Below the pieces are notes generated by a model. That model ran no database searches, had not been told where the DNA came from, and saw nothing but the letters and a program-made list of their open reading frames with translations. DNA of 40,236 nt from Kudoa neothunni. Taxonomy: Eukaryota > Animalia > Cnidaria. A program made the translations under genes and the position numbers. The stretch's first letter is position 1. Every line of letters begins with the position of its first letter. Shown here one piece after another: positions 10,101 to 32,354 of the stretch. The DNA lies in the NCBI GenBank assembly GCA_964304625.1, contig OZ199839.1, positions 9,706,814 to 9,747,049 of the forward strand, given 5' to 3'.

Positions 10101-10930
10101 ATGAATATAGTGATTTGACAATTTTTTTTGATTTCATCGGGAAAAACACTGATTCAAAATGCCCCTTCATGTTGCATGAGAAAACATCAAACGATCGAAC
10201 AGCACCAATAGTTACGTGGTGTAACGATGGCGAGGATTGCTCAGCTAATCAGTGTGTGATCCAAATTAATGGTTTATCAAGAGAAAAGGATTATGTACTG
10301 GTGGTAAAAGCAAAAGATGTTACTACCTACAAAAAATATGACATTCAATGTAAATTATATCTTGCTATTAAAAATTTGTGTGTAAATTAATCATAATCCT
10401 TTTGGTTTGAAAAGGCTCAAATATTTCCAAAACAACTGGGTATTATAATTAAATTCACTTTTTATATTAATATAGTATTTTAGTATTTTAATTATCGTAA
10501 TAAGCTTACCTAAATATACATTTAAAAAATACATGTAACAAGTGAATACAAACACGATGAACTAGAAGACTTTGTTGATCAATTCTTAAGAATGGTTGAA
10601 CAGGGGTATTCCATTATATTATATATGCTTATTCTAATTTTTTTAGTATTTCTTCTTAATTATTTCCTTTTATATATCGTAAATGCGTAGATAATACAGG
10701 TAAAGGTAAGTGCGGAACAGGGATCAGTAAATATAGGTAAATGATGTTTGCTATTTCTTTGTAATAATTTTTAGATACATGTAACATATATATGTGACGG
10801 CGTATGTATCTACTCTTTTTAGACTGTATTCAATAATTCCTATAATACTAGCACTAATGGTAGTGATATGTAGTGATATGCTTTAGCATATATAGAAAAT
10901 TCTCTATGGATGTTTTTTTCCGAGTTATAA
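4140..10930 (+). pseudogene. Paralog 1: disrupted multi-exon gene for a Cys-rich FN3-like-repeat type I membrane protein
   Basis: ATG 4140 (MKKIFSFSLIVIST), intron 4183-4227, then exon-for-exon homology with paralog 2 through the TM exon (LYSIIPIILALMVVI..., ~10823-10930). Lesions: extra A in the A9 run 4994-5002, TAA at 7020-7022, -1 at ~7247, +AT at ~8300, -2 at ~8450, -1 at ~9132, 10-bp tandem duplication 10861-10880. Confidence 0.9.
10605..10690 (+). other. Nested twin intron ([D1,2] stwintron-like) in paralog 1
   Basis: CAG G|g[gtattc...ttttag 10606-10646]tatttc...gcgtag|AT AAT. Removing the inner 41-nt intron regenerates GTATTT. The second splice joins G+AT (Asp) in the frame homologous to paralog 2. 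Confidence 0.7.
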
Positions 10931-19520: not shown

Positions 19521-21854
19521 TGTTACAGGCAATGTATAGAATGCCTAGGCAAAGTGTAAAATACATGCGTTCTTACATACTCTACCTAGGCATTCTATAC
19601 AATGACTAGTTCTACTTCAGGCGATGTATAAAAAATTAATTCCCACCCAAAAGATGTTCGAGTCGTCATTTTCACGTGATAATAGTCCTTGGGATTAGGT
19701 GACGCTACGTAAGCTTGTGCTCACTGCTGTGTGTTTGCAAAAAATGACCGGAGAAAATTCAAATGTAGCATTTGAAAAAGAATCTTGTTTGATTGAAATG
19801 GGAGAACTTTTCCTTACAGAGCTATCAAAAATGCGAACCTACTGGTGCTAAAAATTGTGTTTTCCTTACCGACGCCAGTTATTTCCTTACCGACGCCAGT
19901 TATGAACGACTAGTGAATAATGTGATAAGAGCAAAGTTAACAACAAAGAAAGCACCACGGGATTATTGGCTTCTGAAAACGCTACGATGTGATGACGATA
20001 GAAAAAAAAGCAAGTTGTTCTATCCTGTCAACGAAAGGGTCCGTTCTATTCAGTTTTACGTCAGTGATTCTGAATTATTTGATGTTATTCATGACGCTCA
20101 TGTAGCTATTGGACATGGAGGACGAGATAGAATATTAAAGGAGCTTCGACCAAAATTTAAAAACATTACCCGTCGTGATATTGAATTGTACATTCAATTT
20201 TGCCAGGCATGCCAGAAGAAACAAAAAGGCATGAAGAAAGGCATTGTAATGAAACCGATGGTATTTTCAGATTTCAATTCCCGCTGTCAGGTGGATCTAA
20301 TTGATTTCCAATCCCATCCTGATAAAGAATACAAATTTATAATGGTATATCAAGATCATCTTACTAAGTTTGTTGTTTTACGGGCTATTAATTCAAAAAC
20401 AGCTGAAGAAGTAGCGTTTAATTTAATAGACATATTCACATTACTGGGAGTTCCATCGGTATTGCAGTCAGATAACGGTCGAGAATTTGCCAATAAGGTA
20501 ATCACAAACCTGAAGAAATACTGGCCGACATTGAAGATTGTTCATGGAAAGCCGCGACATTCTCAAATTCAGGGTATTGTTGAGCTAGCTAACCAAGATA
20601 TCGAAAACATGTTTACTACTAGGATGCAAGACGAAAAAACCAACAAATGGAGTGAAGGAATACGTTTCGTCAAACCTATGAAAAATAGAGCTTTCCATTC
20701 CGGGATTCAAAGAACACCTTACGAAGCTCACTTTGGCTGCAAAGTTAAAGTTGGTCTCACTACGTCTTCCATACCTCAAGATGTTTTAGTCGGTATACAC
20801 ACTAAAGAAGAATTAGAAATAATGATTGAAAATATGCACACAATAGAGCTAGAAGATGTGAACCATGTGACCGAAGAAATGAGCGTTACTCCACAGAACC
20901 CTGTTGAGATTTCTGAATACGAAATGGAAAAAACAATGCTACAATGAAGAGATGTGTACTCAAGAATCTGAAAATTCTTCCGTGTGTTGTGTGTGCTTAA
21001 AAGCAAGTACTGGTGCACATACTTGCATTAAGTGTGGCCGAAGCGTCCATATAATCTGTGGGGAAACTCTAAAAGACGACAATGGTGAAACAATTGAAGG
21101 TTATGATGTTGGTATCTGCTGCACTATTTGTTTTAACATTGAAAATGCGGAAAAACATAAGAAGCTGTCTATGTTGAGCCTAGAGATTCAAGCAAAAAAA
21201 AATGAAAATGACTTCGGACAAAAATTTTTCTCCTGCATCTTTGGGCGATACTGTGCGCATTCCTATTCCTGATGTGGACAAGGGATGTGGTGACCCGCGA
21301 AATGTGTTAGCGGTGGTAATGGACCTTACGGAAGATGGTTTTTACCGACTTGGAACTAATTAAGGAAGATTAAAGCAGCTATACGCAAGATCACAATTTA
21401 GCATTTGTCAAAAGCGATTTAAAAATTGTTGATGTCCCTGACCACGAAATACCTCTTCGCTCTGCTGCTACTTCTCAATCTACAGGAAGTGGTCAAGGAT
21501 TTTTAAGGTGTGTGTGTGTAAAACTAAGTGCCAAAATAACAAATGCCTTTGCCTCAAGAAGAATTTAGAATGCAATTCAAAATGCCATTCTAGTCTTCCT
21601 TGTAATAAATAATGTTATTGTTGTGCATCGTTTGTGATTTTTCTGAAGGTTAATTTCGATTTCTTTTTGCGCTTCATTTTTTATTATTAACCATTTTTGA
21701 CGAATATCTTTTTAAATTTGCATATTTGCACATTGTCTGAAGTAGAACTAGTCATTGTATAGAATGCCAAGGTAGAGTATGTAAGAACGCATGTATTATA
21801 CGCATTGCCTAGGCATTCTATATATTGCCTGAATTTCATACATTGCCGGTAACA
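19521..21854 (+). mobile_element. Ginger-type DNA transposon (Gypsy-like integrase with TIRs)
   Basis: TGTTAC...GTAACA termini, ~105-125-bp TIRs (19521-19628 / 21728-21854), 4-bp TSD tata (19517-19520 / 21855-21858). Integrase inside, with no RT or gag. Confidence 0.9.
19744..21612 (+). pseudogene. KRBA2/SCAND3-like integrase-type transposase, frameshifted; core ORF 19793-20947
   Basis: HHCC finger (HVAIGHGGRDR...CQAC) and DDE triad (QVDLID, QSDNGREF, GIVELAN). Followed by a Cys-rich finger, GDTVRIPIPDVDKG, and a GQGF..C.C...CNSKCHSSLPCNK tail in shifted frames with a TAA at 21361. Confidence 0.9.
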
Positions 21855-22145: not shown

Positions 22146-24493
22146 TCCATTCGTGCCAGATGTCCCGGTGCAGGGGACAGCAACTTGTCTCTAATTCTGA
22201 AACTTACTTAAGCGAAATTTTGTAATGTGATAAATATCGGTATAATATATAAAGTAGTTGCTTTTATTAACAGATTTCACAATTATTACTAAACATTATA
22301 ATCATTAAATTAGGCATTTAATTTAGAAATTCCATACCACTGTAGCATTCAAAAGAATTTGAACGTAACATTTAGACTTTTCATGATTTACAAAAATAAA
22401 AATTTGACGTTATGTAAATAATCAATTTCATTAAATAGATAGATTTACAAACGAATCAGGCGCATGATTTTTGAAATAACACAATGTTTAACACGTGTCC
22501 GTATACCGGACATCCGGCATTCATGGACTGGATTTGGATACACCACAATGGATAATGACATTCGGATTAAAAATGATGAAAATGAAAACGAACTATCAGA
22601 AACCATCGTTCTACCTGATGATGACATATCTGAATCAGACACGAATTTTGATGACAATCCAGTGATTATATCATCAAATATGAAAAGAGAAAAATGCGTG
22701 TCATCAAATGATTCCGACAATGAAATTAATTCAGAAATAAAATTTAAAAAATCCTTGAGCAACATAGGTTTGCCACAGGAATCATCCAATGATAATGATC
22801 ATTTTGAAAATCTAAGTGGGTTAATTTATCCCATAGATTATTTTAATAGATTATTCGATAATAAACCGCTTGAATTGATTGTTGTCGAATCAAATCGATA
22901 CACAATCCAGAATAATTCAAACTTTAGAACCTCTATTCCAGAAATCAAAAGCTACCTTGGAGTTCTGATCTTGTGGGGATTGTTCGAATGCCCCGTTACA
23001 GATGTTATTGGTCTAAATAATTTAATTATTCCCCCATTTCTGATGTCTTTTCGAGAGATAGATTCGAGCAGATATAAAAATATTTACATTTTAACGACAA
23101 CGCAAATATTACAAATGATCAATCTTCTCGATGCTTCGATCGATTTGCATAAATTCGACCCTTTTTGGAATATTTGAGAATGTCGTTTTTAAAAATCAAT
23201 TCTGGAACTGTCAATTCGGTGGACGAACAGGTGATTCCATTCAAGGGTAAATGTAGAGAAAAATAATATATCCCAATTAAACCTACAAAATGGGTGTTTA
23301 AAGTCTTTGCATTATGTGGAAGAAATAGGATTGTTTTTAACTTTAGTTTTTATGACGACAGACCTCCTAAGGTCGTTGAGACTTGTGGCTTAAGTTCTGG
23401 AGATTATGTGATCAAGTTATGTGAGCATCTTCCTAGAAACTGAAATTTTCTAGTGTACTTTGATAATTGGTTTACGTCATTCAAGATGCAAATAATGTTG
23501 AAAAAAGAAGAATTTATTCTGTGGGAACCATCCGGAATAATCGAATTAAAGGATGTCCATTGCTTCCAAAAAAGTGTTAATGAAGGAAGAACGTGTTGCT
23601 TTTGATTTTGTCCAAAGTTCGAATAAAAGTTTAATGTTGACTCGATAGTACGATGGTTCAGTCGTGACGTTATCATTAACTCATTCTGCCATTGAACCTT
23701 TAACAAATTTTTTTAGATTTGATAAGCGCCAAAAGAAGCGAGTTAAAGTAAATAGTCCAGCTGCCGTATCAGAATACAACAAGAAAATGTGAAGTGTTGA
23801 CCTGTCTGACATGTTAATGTCACTTTATATGTTGAGTCACAAATGCAGAAAATTCTATATGCGAATTTTTTGGGGGTATCAATACAGCAATAACTAATTC
23901 ATGGTCGTTATTCGGATGACAGTGCAAAATGCGCAATACATCAAAAGCGGAAACTCTTGATCTGCTATCCCTTACATACTCATTTTGTGAATCACTGATA
24001 TAAAAATCAATTATCCAAACAAACTCATAAACGAGGCCGTCCAAATATGGATTTCACTCCAAACAGAACTAACGAAAACATAAAATTACCAAGGAAAAAT
24101 ACATTTCATTATCCGATCAAATAAGATTTGATAATATAGGTCACCTGTCTGAAGTATCTTCATTTCCAAGAAGATGTAAAATTTGCGGAAGAAAAACCCA
24201 AGTGGTATACTTGAAATGTGATGCTTCAAGGTGTCTTGTGAACGGTAGGAATTGTTTCTACATTTATCATAATATATAATTTATATTTTATTAATTATTT
24301 TTTGTTCTTTATGCGATTCCGTTCGAATTCTACCATGCGCACAAATTCCGGTCCACGGATTAACGTTTAATATCCCTTTTTATGAAATGTTAAAAAGTAT
24401 TTTTAGAAAATAAATATCGTTTTTATATTAAATTAACTTATTTAAATTTATATATTTTTTTCATCGATACATAAAAATTCAAGCGTGAAAGAA
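22146..24493 (+). mobile_element. piggyBac DNA transposon, decayed full-length copy
   Basis: TTAA at 22142-22145 and 24494-24497 with degenerate short TIRs (tccattcgtgc / gcgtgaaagaa). Subterminal tgtccc...gggaca palindrome. Transposase relic inside. Confidence 0.75.
22548..24279 (+). pseudogene. piggyBac (PGBD-like) transposase pseudogene
   Basis: Acidic N-terminus, then SVDEQVIPFKGKC...PIKPTKWVFK, VYFDNWFTSF, YNKKM*SVDLSDML and a C-terminal Cys-rich domain RRCKIC...KCDASRCL...RNCFYIYH. Many stops and frameshifts. Confidence 0.9.
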
Positions 24494-28200: not shown

Positions 28201-31200
28201 TCAAATAATTTTTTTTCTAATACATGTGAAAATAATGGAAAATGTTTATACAGTATGTGTAATAATGTGACTTTTGGAGATATGCCAGATGGCGTAAAAG
28301 CGGTCAAAATTCGTGTCTTAAAATTAGGAATGAGACCTACTGTTGGTTACCAAAACAACATCTACATATGTAATGTATTAATATTATACGAAATAGTAAT
28401 TCTATTATTTAGTGAAACAGGGAAAGGATGTACCTGTGACAACATCAGACAACAACATAAAAATTGATATTAGTGCTAATAGTAAAAATGAAGGAGGCGA
28501 ACCTGTTAGTGGACACTCCACTGTTACATGTTCTTTGTCGTATTGGAATGCGTATGCTCCGTTGGTTTATGAAAATGGAAGGAAAGCTGTTACTATCCCT
28601 TCATCCTGTACTTTCTCCGAGATGGAAATATTACCAAGTCCAACTCATTTACATAATGATATTATGGTAAAAATAATAAATATACCTAATTATTCTCCAA
28701 AAAAATATTTTTATCACAAAACAAGTATTTAGTATGAATATATATTTGTAATAAATATTATGTAGTTCAATCAACCGCACTTTCAGCTACAGATTTAATA
28801 GTTACATTAAAAGCAAATGGATTTTCTTTCACTCCTAGTACGTCCGCTTCATCCGCCACATGCACCGTCTACGTAAAAGAAAAAGATTCAACGAATGGTT
28901 ATTACCCAGCTATATGTACCGGAAAAGTATTGTGTACAAATACTTGCAACACGCAGTTTACCCTTATTGGGCTTTACTCTGGCGTTATTTACGATATTAA
29001 AATTGTACCTAGTGGAAATTACAAAGTTTTAGAATTAAAAAACATACAAACAAGTAATATAATTTATATACATTTTAATAAATATTAAATAGTTGGCCGT
29101 AAAATTTATTTTGAAATTTCCGGAGAAACTAAGAAGAATAACCTTAAAATTACTTCGAAATCTTCTATTGATAATGCCGCTAATACTAATTGTTTTTATC
29201 AACTATATAGACATGAAACAAATGAATGTAATAAGTTCTTTCATCTTATTTTATTTACATGATGTAGTTTCACCAACAAATATACAAAAATCATGCATTG
29301 AATGTACTGGAGATAATCTCAAAAAATGCAATGAGATTCGATTCGATTCAAATTCGTATAGTAATAAGTACAATTACACATTAATGATATACGTCGATGG
29401 AAAGTCACCACCAGTCAAAATCCCGATTCCAGGTATTATAAATTTTGTTATATCTAATATACATATATATTTAGCTTTCTCAAGGCATGGTAAACTTCAG
29501 CAAAAATTTGTTCCCGCAATTGGTGAAGATATTGAGAAATTCTCTGTTTCACTTGCGAATTTTCCCCAAAACAGCAGATGCGTGATAAAATTATCAAGTT
29601 TTAGTGAAACACCAATATTCAATAAGCCAGATTGCTCTACTATTGCAAATGAAGGTTACTGTATTGTTGATTGCATAACACCTAATCCAGTTGAAATTGA
29701 TTATTTAAATTCAAAAATTGATCGATATATATCCGTTTGTTATGGCTTAAATGATGACGAAGCAAAAAAATGCAAACAAGTATCGGTTTTCCAAATTAGA
29801 ATGGGTATGTTAGCATTTGTATTATATTTATTCAATATAAAAAGATTTTTCTGTATTTTTGTTTTTTATTTTATACATTTTTTATAGATTATCGGATGAA
29901 AAATACATATACAATTGCCCATGGTGAGAATAAGATTAGATTATCGTACAAGTCAAACTCAAAAACCGAATGGGAAGTGAGTACGGACGAGAAAAGTGAT
30001 TTATCCAGTGGCTCACAAAAAACTGCCTTAGATAAATCAGATTATTCTGCTAACGTCGAAACGAAATCTGCTGATTTTTCGGTTGATAGGTTAATGAGTT
30101 ATTACAAAATGAATTCAACATTAATATGGCCTGGAATAATATATTATACAAACAGTACTTTCTTAAATGAAAAAATTCCAATTAAATCTCAAGTTATTTA
30201 CTCAATTTCAAGTATCGCTGATAAAAATAATCAACTAAAATTAAATTTTTCGCCTGGTCCTTACAATGATGAAATGTGCCACATCAAAGTATTTGAAGTT
30301 CAGTCAAATGGTACAGATAAAGAAAATAGTGTTTTGAATACATGTGGATTAATAAATGATGGATGCTACCAACTATGCCAAGACGGTTTAATTGATTTAA
30401 ATAATGATTATCAAAATGTTGGAGTGATAATAAAAAGAAGATTCGATACCGTGGGATTCAAGCAATACCACAAAAGTTTTTAAAATGTTTCATTTAATTG
30501 ATAAATTTTTATAGGAGATGATACTGGCCTTGGTTTATCTGCAATTTCTGATGTTGGTGTTACAATCACTGGGCTTAATATTTACAATAATTTAAAAAAA
30601 CAAGATTCAACCGTAACATGTACCATTAAAATATCCAGAGCTAATACCATATCGACTGAAGCGAGGGCTCAGTGTAATTCTAACAATGCTCCATGTTCCA
30701 TCGACTGCCAACAGTCATATATGATTAATAATTTAAGAGCTGGTACGAATTATCTGATATCAGTAGAAATTATTAATCTTGGAATTAATGGTCATTATAT
30801 CAAAAAGATGATGTTTAGAACGAGTAATACGGAATTCAAATTTTAAATTCTGAATTGAAATAGGCGGCGGAGATGGATTAACTATAACAAACTCACAAGC
30901 TACGTTAATAGCTGGGAATGCAACAGTTACACCCTACCAGGCTGACAATTCTCTTCCGATATGTAGAGTATACCTTCGAAAGGGTGATGAATCAAATCCA
31001 AAATACATGGCTACATGCGAAGGAATGGGAGCTTGTGAGAACAAATGTGAGGGTCAATTCAAAATAGTTAACCTAGTGTTGGGACAAAAATATAAAATAT
31101 TTGTGGAACCATCAGACGGTAAAAATGTTAAAACCTACGATATTACTACAAGTATTATACTCAGAATATTTGTTGTCTATATAAATTATAATAGTAAATG

Positions 31201-32055
31201 CTGATCTCACTTTTTCAGTGGATTTTATGGAAAACAATGAATTAAAAATTGTCGTAGAGTTTATTGGAAAAAAGAATGACTCTAAATGTCCATTTATATT
31301 ACAAGAGAAGAAGGACAAAATATTATCGACAATTACTTGGTGTAGTGATGACGAGCCTTGTGCGGAAAATAATTGTGTTATTAACCTCAATAGATTGTCG
31401 AGAGAAAAAGATTATGTTTGGAGTGTAAAAGCGAAAGATTATTCGAAATATAAAGAACATGATATTTTATGTAAATATATTTTTTACATCTTATTAATTA
31501 TCTATTTATATATAACACTATAAAAAGATTCAAAAATTCCAAATCTTGAGAGGTAAATAAAGGCACTCATGTTAAATATTTATCAATTATTTTAGTAAAT
31601 AAATAGATTATTTGATTAAATAAACAAAATATAAATAGAGGAGCAGCCATTGAGTAGCGAATATACAAATATCAACATGGATGATATTGTTCAAAAGGTC
31701 ATAAGAACAGTAGAAAAGGGGTAACTTAATATTTTATTCTTAATTTTAATTCTAATTATCACATAGTAAATTTCTTATAATAATTACTATTAAAAATTAT
31801 CAAATGAGTAGATGGCAAAGAGAAGCATGATTATACAGCCGCAAAGAATGAGAATTCGTATTTTATGTTAGTATTATTATGTTTAATACTTTATTAGGTC
31901 GTCTAATAGATACCTGTAAATTAATTCATGTAATGTCAATGCTAATTCTTTTATGTAGTCTTTATGGAATGATCCCCATTGTGGCCGCATTGTTGGTAAT
32001 GATTGGTCTAATTGCCTACAGAAGGAGCGCTAAAGATGTTAGTTACGATTTATAA
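25227..32055 (+). CDS. Paralog 2: intact 22-exon gene, ~1938-aa type I membrane protein with tandem Cys-rich FN3-like modules
   Basis: Exons 25227-25269, 25314-25679, 25721-26254, 26295-26624, 26664-26972, 27015-27314, 27354-27770, 27809-28369, 28413-28724, 28766-29053, 29093-29227, 29268-29432, 29475-29804, 29888-30475, 30515-30823, 30864-31151, 31195-31470, 31528-31551, 31639-31719, 31812-31857, 31898-31915, 31959-32055. Total 5817 nt, open throughout. Signal peptide MTINVSLILILISTIIHS. FN3 'L-x-x-G-x-x-Y' motifs (YMINNLRAGTNYLISV, FIIVNLDPKTSYKITV). TM LLYGMIPIVAALLVMIGLIAY, then RRSAKDVSYDL*. Confidence 0.88.
31552..31638 (+). other. Nested twin intron 1 ([D1,2] stwintron-like) in paralog 2
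   Basis: GAG A|g[gtaaat...ttttag 31553-31595, 43 nt]taaata...aaatag|AG GAG CAG. Regenerated donor GTAAAT, outer intron 44 nt. One-step splicing 31553-31638 hits TAG within 7 codons. Confidence 0.75.
31720..31811 (+). other. Nested twin intron 2 ([D1,2] stwintron-like) in paralog 2
   Basis: AAG G|g[gtaact...acatag 31721-31766, 46 nt]taaatt...gagtag|AT GGC AAA. Regenerated donor GTAAAT, outer intron 46 nt. One-step splicing gives GGA TGG CAA AGA GAA GCA TGA. Confidence 0.78.
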
Positions 32056-32354
32056 ATGGAATAGCAAAATCAATATATTTAATTTATTATTTGATTTCAT
32101 ATCAATTGTTCCCTATTTCCAATTTTTGTTATTTACAACTATACAATACATAATTTTTTATATATGATTATAAGGAGAAAGATTGAAGTTTTCACAATTT
32201 TGTTAAAATTAATTTTTTTGAGATAATGATATTTCATTTTTTCTTGATGAAGTAACAATAATTATATTTTCCAGTCAATATGCTGCTTTTGAATAATTTA
32301 GTGTACCTTTTCTGTTTTTTAATATTAAAAATATTTTGAGCTATATATTTTCAA

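Follow-up and report, generated by a model that had tools for sequence, protein, structure and literature searches.

The 3' end of a long plus-strand gene in the genome assembly of the myxozoan cnidarian Kudoa neothunni probably carries two consecutive introns, each of which is interrupted within its donor site by another complete intron. The window analyzed was the whole stretch of 40,236 nucleotides (nt) from contig OZ199839.1 (assembly GCA_964304625.1, forward-strand positions 9,706,814 to 9,747,049; GC content ~30%), in which the gene occupies ~25.3–32.06 kb. In the [D1,2] type of spliceosomal twin introns (stwintrons), known from ascomycete fungi through the work of Flipphi, Fekete, and co-workers (PMC6616335, PMC12403724, PMC9024468), a complete GT..AG intron sits between donor nucleotides 1 and 2 of an outer intron. 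The two donor-disrupted nested introns of the Kudoa gene, located in the stalk region of what appears to be a multi-module surface protein, would belong to this type, and from the sequence evidence the probability of this reading is estimated at about 0.78. Their removal would then involve ordered two-step splicing by the spliceosome.

The gene is composed of phase-1 exons, each corresponding to a module of ~100 residues with conserved cysteines. The ordinary introns close to the twin introns are 35, 39, 40, 67, 57, 40, and 43 nt long, and the two positions in question, 31552–31638 and 31720–31811, both have the layout exon-G-GT..(43/46 nt)..TAG-TAAAT..(43/45 nt)..AG-exon. Exon 17 (31219–31470), the last four-cysteine extracellular module, has an open frame, is in phase 1 at both ends and ends at a GTAAAT donor (from 31471); it is followed by the ordinary intron 17 (31471–31527, 57 nt, GT-AG, phase 1) and by exon 18 (31528–31551, 24 nt, phase 1-1), which codes for (Y)SKIPNLE and the first base of a K codon. 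At site A, the 'extra' G at 31552 would represent nucleotide 1 of the split outer donor. It precedes the 43-nt inner intron A (31553–31595, GTAAAT..TTTTAG, with the 3' end TATTTTAG), and the 43-nt remainder of outer intron A (31596–31638, TAAATAAATAG..AAATAG) would form, together with G31552, a GTAAAT..AG intron of 44 nt once the inner intron is gone. Exon 19 (31639–31719, 81 nt, phase 1-1) codes for (K)EQPLSSEYTNINMDDIVQKVIRTVEK and the first base of a D codon. Site B repeats the arrangement with the 'extra' G at 31720 as nucleotide 1 of the outer donor, a 46-nt inner intron B (31721–31766, GTAACT..CACATAG, 3' end TCACATAG) and a 45-nt remainder (31767–31811, TAAATTTC..GAGTAG, 3' end ATGAGTAG), from which a 46-nt GTAAAT..AG intron would result. 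Both of these G's are present as G in all parsed paralogues. Downstream follow exon 20 (31812–31857, 46 nt, phase 1 in and phase 2 out, coding for (D)GKEKHDYTAAKNEN), the ordinary intron 20 (31858–31897, 40 nt), exon 21 (31898–31915, 18 nt), the ordinary intron 21 (31916–31958, 43 nt) and exon 22 (31959–32055), which contains the transmembrane segment, a short cytoplasmic tail (..YRRSAKDVSYDL) and the stop codon TAA at 32053–32055. All of these features are on the plus strand.

The alternative reading frames were computed by local translation, and the exons were searched singly and not as a joined sequence. When each ~90-nt unit is removed in one step from its GT to its final AG, one G too many is left and the frame runs into ..PNLERGAAIE and a stop. 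When the inner intron is taken out first, the frame stays open through the transmembrane segment to the stop, giving ..PNLE-K-EQPLSSEYTNINMDDIVQKVIRTVEK-D-GKEKHDYTAAKNENSSSNRYLLYGMIPIVAALLVMIGLIAYRRSAKDVSYDL with the junction peptides ..PNLE-K-EQPL.. and ..VEK-D-GKEK.., while products of the first step only, or of the inner donor joined to the outer acceptor, reach a stop 2–24 codons further on and lose the anchor. The layout of both ~90-nt gaps, the frameshift with early stop after one-step removal and the GTAAAT donor with a phase-1 junction after inner-first removal had all been proposed in an earlier sequence-only reading of this DNA; on re-reading, its coordinates matched exactly and the translations agreed. 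The same reading had also counted 17 upstream phase-1 introns, of which the five directly upstream of exon 18 (35, 39, 40, 67, and 57 nt) were confirmed as phase 1.

The sequence of events might be as follows. At each position, the GT of the inner intron would be the sole 5' splice site usable in the pre-mRNA. Its partner would be the closest strong acceptor, a TAG at the end of a T-rich tract ~43–46 nt downstream, since intron definition predicts such nearest-acceptor pairing where introns are ~40 nt long. The first splice would fuse the G to T[AG]A[AT].., creating a new GTAAAT-type donor 1 nt upstream of the first cut. This donor would then be used together with the outer AG, ~43–45 nt further on, and the G would leave with the intron remainder. 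No other order than this inside-out one would keep the junctions in phase 1 and the frame open into the transmembrane exon. As far as can be judged from the sequence, no decomposition into canonical GT-AG introns other than [D1,2] nesting would yield the required mRNA.

The strongest support comes from the gene family. The 3' end of the gene had 31 DNA matches in the genome, and the 26-residue peptide of exon 19 had 50, all of which were read and parsed. The pattern [phase-1 base]-G-GT..TAG/T[AG]A..AG (the slash marks a splice boundary) was found at 98 of the 100 junctions, that is, at both positions of the 50 paralogues, and exons 18 and 19 were 24 and 81 nt long in every one of them. In the frame that skips the G, stops were absent from exon 18 (0/35 distinct copies), exon 19 (0/42), and exon 20 (0/37), as opposed to the frame of one-step GT-AG removal, in which 41/42 exon-19 and 37/37 exon-20 copies contain stops. 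The entropy at codon positions 1, 2, and 3 of the twin-intron frame was 0.69, 0.51, and 1.05 in exon 19 and 0.72, 0.64, and 1.28 in exon 20, the third-position value being about twice those of the first two, and this third-position concentration of variation was seen only in the twin-intron frame. These statistics argue that the exons flanking the twin introns are under purifying selection as coding sequence in the G-skipping frame. Consequently, the translated mRNA must be without the G at both sites, whatever the mechanism. Under the twin-intron model, 27 of the 30 parsed copies continued through to the conserved transmembrane segment and an end in ..YDL or ..YEL. In one copy, the outer acceptor was shifted by exactly 3 nt.

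In a very diverged relative (L071, minus strand of contig C2), the stalk exons measure 27 and 39 nt and are unrelated in sequence. This relative nevertheless contains a tandem twin pair of 45 + 47 nt and 96 + 48 nt (at ~2401–2900 of the reverse complement, G000:C2:~2580600–2581100), and its transmembrane exon is reached only by the twin-intron model. The presence of the same pair in L071 indicates that it predates the diversification of the superfamily. The inner intron of the second L071 twin, with 96 nt, is twice the usual length.

The halves of the twin introns resemble ordinary introns of the same genes. The inner introns (44 distinct sequences) were 40–50 nt long with a median of 43 nt, had donors of the form GT[AG]A (position 3: A in 34, G in 9; position 4: A in 37; position 6: A in 21, T in 21) and ended in a T-rich tract with TAG in 44/44. 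The recreated outer introns (41 distinct) were 39–47 nt long, again with a median of 43 nt; their donors read G-T-A-A-A/T-T (A at position 3 in 38, A at position 4 in 36, T at position 6 in 31) and the acceptor was TAG in 40/41. For comparison, the 61 distinct ordinary introns of this gene family that flank the twin introns were 32–62 nt long with a median of 40 nt (A at position 3 in 55, A at position 4 in 46, T at position 6 in 43), and GT-AG in 61/61. Each twin half thus falls within the ordinary length range, the recreated hexamer fits the ordinary donor profile, and its variants (GTAAAT, GTGAAT, GTAATT, GTATTT) vary in a donor-like manner. A divergence test was made with 12 lineages having an exon-19 identity below 80%. 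The interiors of their inner introns were no more similar to one another than shuffled sequences (0.555 vs. 0.554 and 0.529 vs. 0.513), while TAG/T[AG][AT] with two halves of normal intron size was kept in 24/24 twin introns. In composition-matched shuffles, TAG/T[AG][AT] with both halves of 30–65 nt occurred in 7% (0.07 per intron).

The number of G's at 31552 and 31720 was checked against reads; one G fewer at either place had been named beforehand as one of the findings that would overturn the twin-intron interpretation. A 636-nt contig from run X1 (31284–31919) differed from the window by 4 substitutions, without gaps, and had the same G count at both sites, so both counts are borne out by another haplotype or read set; together with the paralogues, which keep the G, this leaves the interpretation standing. 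Run X1 (depth 6–7) is probably the sample behind the assembly, and the check is thus not fully independent. In total, five single-base differences were seen between the assembly and the X1 contigs (window positions 31677, 31331, 31748, 31808, and 30973), probably reflecting allelic variation of a diploid parasite stage. One of them, A to G at 31677, changes Met to Val in exon 19, and Val is also found in the paralogue L002.

An explanation that would produce the identical mature mRNA, and so fits the frame evidence equally well, is one-step non-canonical splicing in which each ~90-nt intron (31552–31638 and 31720–31811) is removed as GG-AG. Non-canonical donors are common in some tunicates (PMC13326754), and besides its canonical U1 gene the Kudoa genome has one whose 5' arm is altered. 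The U1 small nuclear RNA genes form a head-to-head pair (L048:1203–1361, minus strand, and L048:1717–1876, plus strand, corresponding to G000:C2:~670702–671375; 110 and 90 bits). The 5' arm reads ACUUACCUG, the canonical sequence, in one of them and ACUUACUUG in the other, which has a C-to-U change where exon position -1 pairs. This change, opposite position -1, makes no pairing to GGUAAA, and the variant U1 was rejected as the cause of the GG donors because its one 5'-arm change does not fit them. Moreover, a perfect GT lies 1 nt downstream of each apparent GG donor and should win, and all 61 ordinary introns are GT-AG, which in combination with a canonical U1 argues against a generally relaxed donor rule. 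GG-AG splicing also leaves unexplained why the inner T-rich TAG and T[AG]A[AT] are invariant in introns whose interiors are saturated, and why a doubled total length divides into halves of normal size. We consider this explanation unlikely. Somewhat more improbable appears the possibility that the transmembrane exons are not normally joined, with the main products stopping after exon 18 or 19 and the geometry being a relic or a leaky gate. All incomplete and one-step products do stop within 2–24 codons, myxozoans have been reported as prone to intron retention (PMC12239612), and several family copies are visibly decaying. However, exons 19–22 are constrained in a frame that is provided only by two-step or GG-AG removal, which would be unexpected if they were rarely translated, and the transmembrane segment and the ..SYDL tail are conserved in 27 of the 30 parsed copies.

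It is very improbable that one-step GT-AG splicing is followed by recoding, whereby editing of the RNA or a ribosomal +1 frameshift would take care of the extra G. In formal terms, the data allow for a +1 correction at each of the two sites, and frame changes are present in an ORC5-like gene of the same genome; the latter, however, lie inside exons and not at introns and look like decay or assembly error. The junctions vary (..GAGAG/AGGAG, ..TTAAG/AAGAG, ..ACAGG/ATGAA) without a conserved slippery or stall motif, and recoding leaves the conserved inner splice signals unexplained. Finally, the extra G's could stem from homopolymer errors, the assembly being based on long reads at low coverage, or the gene could be a pseudogene. 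The assembly coverage is only ~7x (PMC12239612), the X1 depth is in the same range, and one copy, L067, has many 1-nt homopolymer insertions compared with L066. Yet the G of site A stands in a run of merely two G's, the X1 contig shows no gap in spite of its four allelic differences, and the flanking exons are under purifying selection. Assembly error as the source of the extra G's is effectively refuted by the 98 concordant junctions out of 100 in 50 diverged copies, and the chance of such an artifact, or of a pseudogene, is close to negligible.

Several observations weigh against the [D1,2] reading. All cases examined represent two homologous positions in one gene superfamily, so that all twin introns trace back to two ancestral positions and the copies are not independent origins. 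The sequence-level predictions of the [D1,2] interpretation as to geometry, frames, and lengths were borne out; its wider claim, that such splicing operates in this genome at large, would reach beyond these two positions. Two of the 100 junctions have one G more and fit neither model: both concern twin intron B with a longer G-run before the GT, namely L018 (= L002; G000:C2:~9491148, GAAAAGGGGGT) and L065 (G000:C2:~6276306, CACAAGGGGT). As their frame is broken under both the twin-intron and the one-step models, they are either pseudogenes or homopolymer errors. The acceptor is lost in L024/L025 and in L053, with TG in place of the exon-19 acceptor AG in L024/L025. A diverged paralogue within the window (10415–10692, plus strand), read by eye as ..ACTG/G/GTATTA..TTTTAG/TATTTT.. 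and ..CAGG/G/GTATTC..TTTTTAG/TATTTC..GCGTAG, retains the geometry of two twins, but no AG acceptor precedes its exon-19 homologue; this copy is probably decaying. Part of the family is therefore decaying, or else the assembly has local homopolymer errors. The copy L067 (G000:C2:~6252995, plus strand), with its 1-nt homopolymer insertions in exons and introns relative to the near-identical L066 (G000:C2:~11914692, minus strand), is either a local error of the low-coverage assembly or a freshly decaying copy.

The branch-point motif YTRAY, by which separate branch sites of the two units might have shown themselves, occurred no more often than in shuffled sequence, both in the inner (0.51 vs. 0.56) and in the outer halves (0.45 vs. 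0.44); even in ordinary introns, its enrichment was only weak (0.69 vs. 0.52). Three raw-read RNA runs (X5–X7), filed under the same species label as the DNA runs, gave 0 reads over 29900–32160, and none of the indexed RNA runs contained the stretch. They are almost certainly host (tuna) material, and the lack of reads at the locus is explained by the small share of transcriptomic reads that came from the parasite (PMC12239612). A search with exon 17 against 1.84 billion protein representatives returned nothing at E ≤ 0.001, and hence no transcript-derived protein. Retrocopies or intron-less paralogues, which would have preserved the mature junction, were absent from the 50 homologues of exon 19; the open frames around these were 27–65 residues long.

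That the gene comes from an animal had been suggested by the sequence-only reading, and this was corroborated by the assembly, which is that of Kudoa neothunni, and by nuclear-receptor zf-C4 DNA-binding domains found in the genome (87 bits). To our knowledge, nuclear receptors are confined to animals. The twin-intron gene thus very probably belongs to the myxozoan itself. Pfam searches for Wnt and innexin gave no match, which says little, as the controls gave none either. The assembly published by Weber, Paulini, and Blaxter was obtained from an infected yellowfin tuna with ~7x HiFi coverage; it comprises 40.2 Mb with a scaffold N50 of 12.0 Mb and 30.41% GC, in three chromosomes and a circular mitochondrial genome, and its median intron is 49 bp (PMC12239612). 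Very few transcriptomic reads could be mapped to the parasite, and the genes were predicted by BRAKER3 from protein hints (PMC12239612). The words 'splice' and 'non-canonical' are absent from that paper. A telomere repeat (TAAACC)n was reported at one chromosome end (PMC12239612), in agreement with an array of more than 500 bp that we found at the very end of contig 2 (G000:C2:12039536–12040069) and nowhere else.

Several further features of the gene and of its surroundings were recorded. The cysteine modules had nothing above threshold in Pfam, with one sub-threshold fn3 match (E = 0.0011). Near-identical family copies occur as inverted pairs 8–37 kb apart: L024/L025 (G000:C2:9660838, plus, and 9697420, minus), L020/L021 (C2:9668607, minus, and 9689614, plus), and L042/L043 (C3:10162436, plus, and 10170271, minus). 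On C2, one pair is nested within the other, which points to a large palindromic duplication immediately upstream of the window. The window itself holds remains of transposable elements between its two family genes, at 20000–20944 and 22443–24276; both are broken into several frames, and they represent a retroelement integrase (Integrase_H2C2 + rve) and a piggyBac-like transposase (DDE_Tnp_1_7). The ORC5-like gene (L069, G000:C3:1127665–1130796) has a Walker-A motif, a weak ORC5_C match, an in-frame TAG, and conserved segments in alternating frames without intervening introns; it is a decayed gene or the product of assembly indels, unrelated to the twin introns.

Beyond the nesting itself, the Kudoa introns share with the fungal [D1,2] stwintrons the frameshift after one-step removal, the open frame attained only by consecutive inside-out splicing, and two short units of a size typical for an intron-definition genome. 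They differ in their host, an animal, and in their arrangement as a tandem pair 81 nt apart. Furthermore, the Kudoa pair is not scattered as sequence-similar 'sister' copies at new positions but fixed at two homologous positions of a family with more than 50 members, and it has been kept through the whole diversification of this family. In fungi, the splicing intermediate has been seen by reverse-transcription PCR, while in Kudoa it is a predicted one. In the literature searched, the 12 papers with the term stwintron all deal with fungi or name it only incidentally, in line with the earlier reading, which knew of no description in such a genome. The Kudoa introns are, therefore, probably the first [D1,2] twin introns in animals, with an unusual tandem arrangement and a long conservation in a large family.

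Multi-step intron removal as such is known from animals. In the recursive splicing of Drosophila and vertebrates, with its ratchet points and recursive-splice exons (PMC10156609; Burnette et al., 2005, as cited in PMC6616335), an intron is likewise removed stepwise, with the junction of the first step restoring a 5' splice site. However, at a ratchet point (AG/GTRAGT) the new GT is wholly intronic and the exon end remains unchanged, whereas at AG/TAAAT the G would come from the exon end of the first step, shortening the exon by 1 nt. In all Kudoa copies, the AG of the inner boundary is followed directly by T, without the G of AG/GT. Recursive splicing also serves introns of kilobases, as opposed to a total of ~90 nt here. 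The nested introns, or intrasplicing, of long human introns (dystrophin, protein 4.1R; PMC4829307, and references in PMC6616335) similarly have an intron within an intron and several steps, but their outer sites are intact from the start and the order is not obligatory, while the Kudoa outer donor would be absent until the inner intron is gone. Finally, the non-GT introns of appendicularian tunicates (PMC13326754) are comparable in that the mature Kudoa junctions, taken at face value, would pass for GG-AG introns of an animal whose introns are very short. The tunicates have non-canonical boundaries throughout their genomes, accompanied by changed U1 and U2AF; in Kudoa, the ordinary introns examined are GT-AG and the seemingly GG-AG ones hold a complete inner intron.

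Confirmation with RNA would make this the first case of donor-disrupted twin introns beyond the fungi, and in an animal whose introns measure ~40 nt; obligatory ordered splicing would then prove to be not a fungal curiosity but a trait that can be stably inherited for a long time. The case bears on how short-intron spliceosomes choose their sites (nearest acceptor first) and on the origin of introns inside splice sites. The family, in which these two twin introns exist in 100 natural variants, also offers a clean test system. With predictors restricted to GT-AG, such as the BRAKER3 annotation from protein hints (PMC12239612), all of the more than 50 genes in the family will probably come out truncated or frameshifted, and the transmembrane anchor of what appears to be the main surface-protein repertoire of the parasite would be missed. 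A more speculative, and in our view rather doubtful, suggestion is that the tandem pair acts as a kinetic gate, where four ordered reactions within 260 nt are needed to obtain the transmembrane anchor and incomplete or one-step products, ending just before it, would give secreted or degraded forms. Were this true, nested splicing would be a regulatory device of a large and fast-evolving myxozoan surface-protein family, and the pair, retained from a time before the family diversified, would be the first case of functional stwintrons in an animal.

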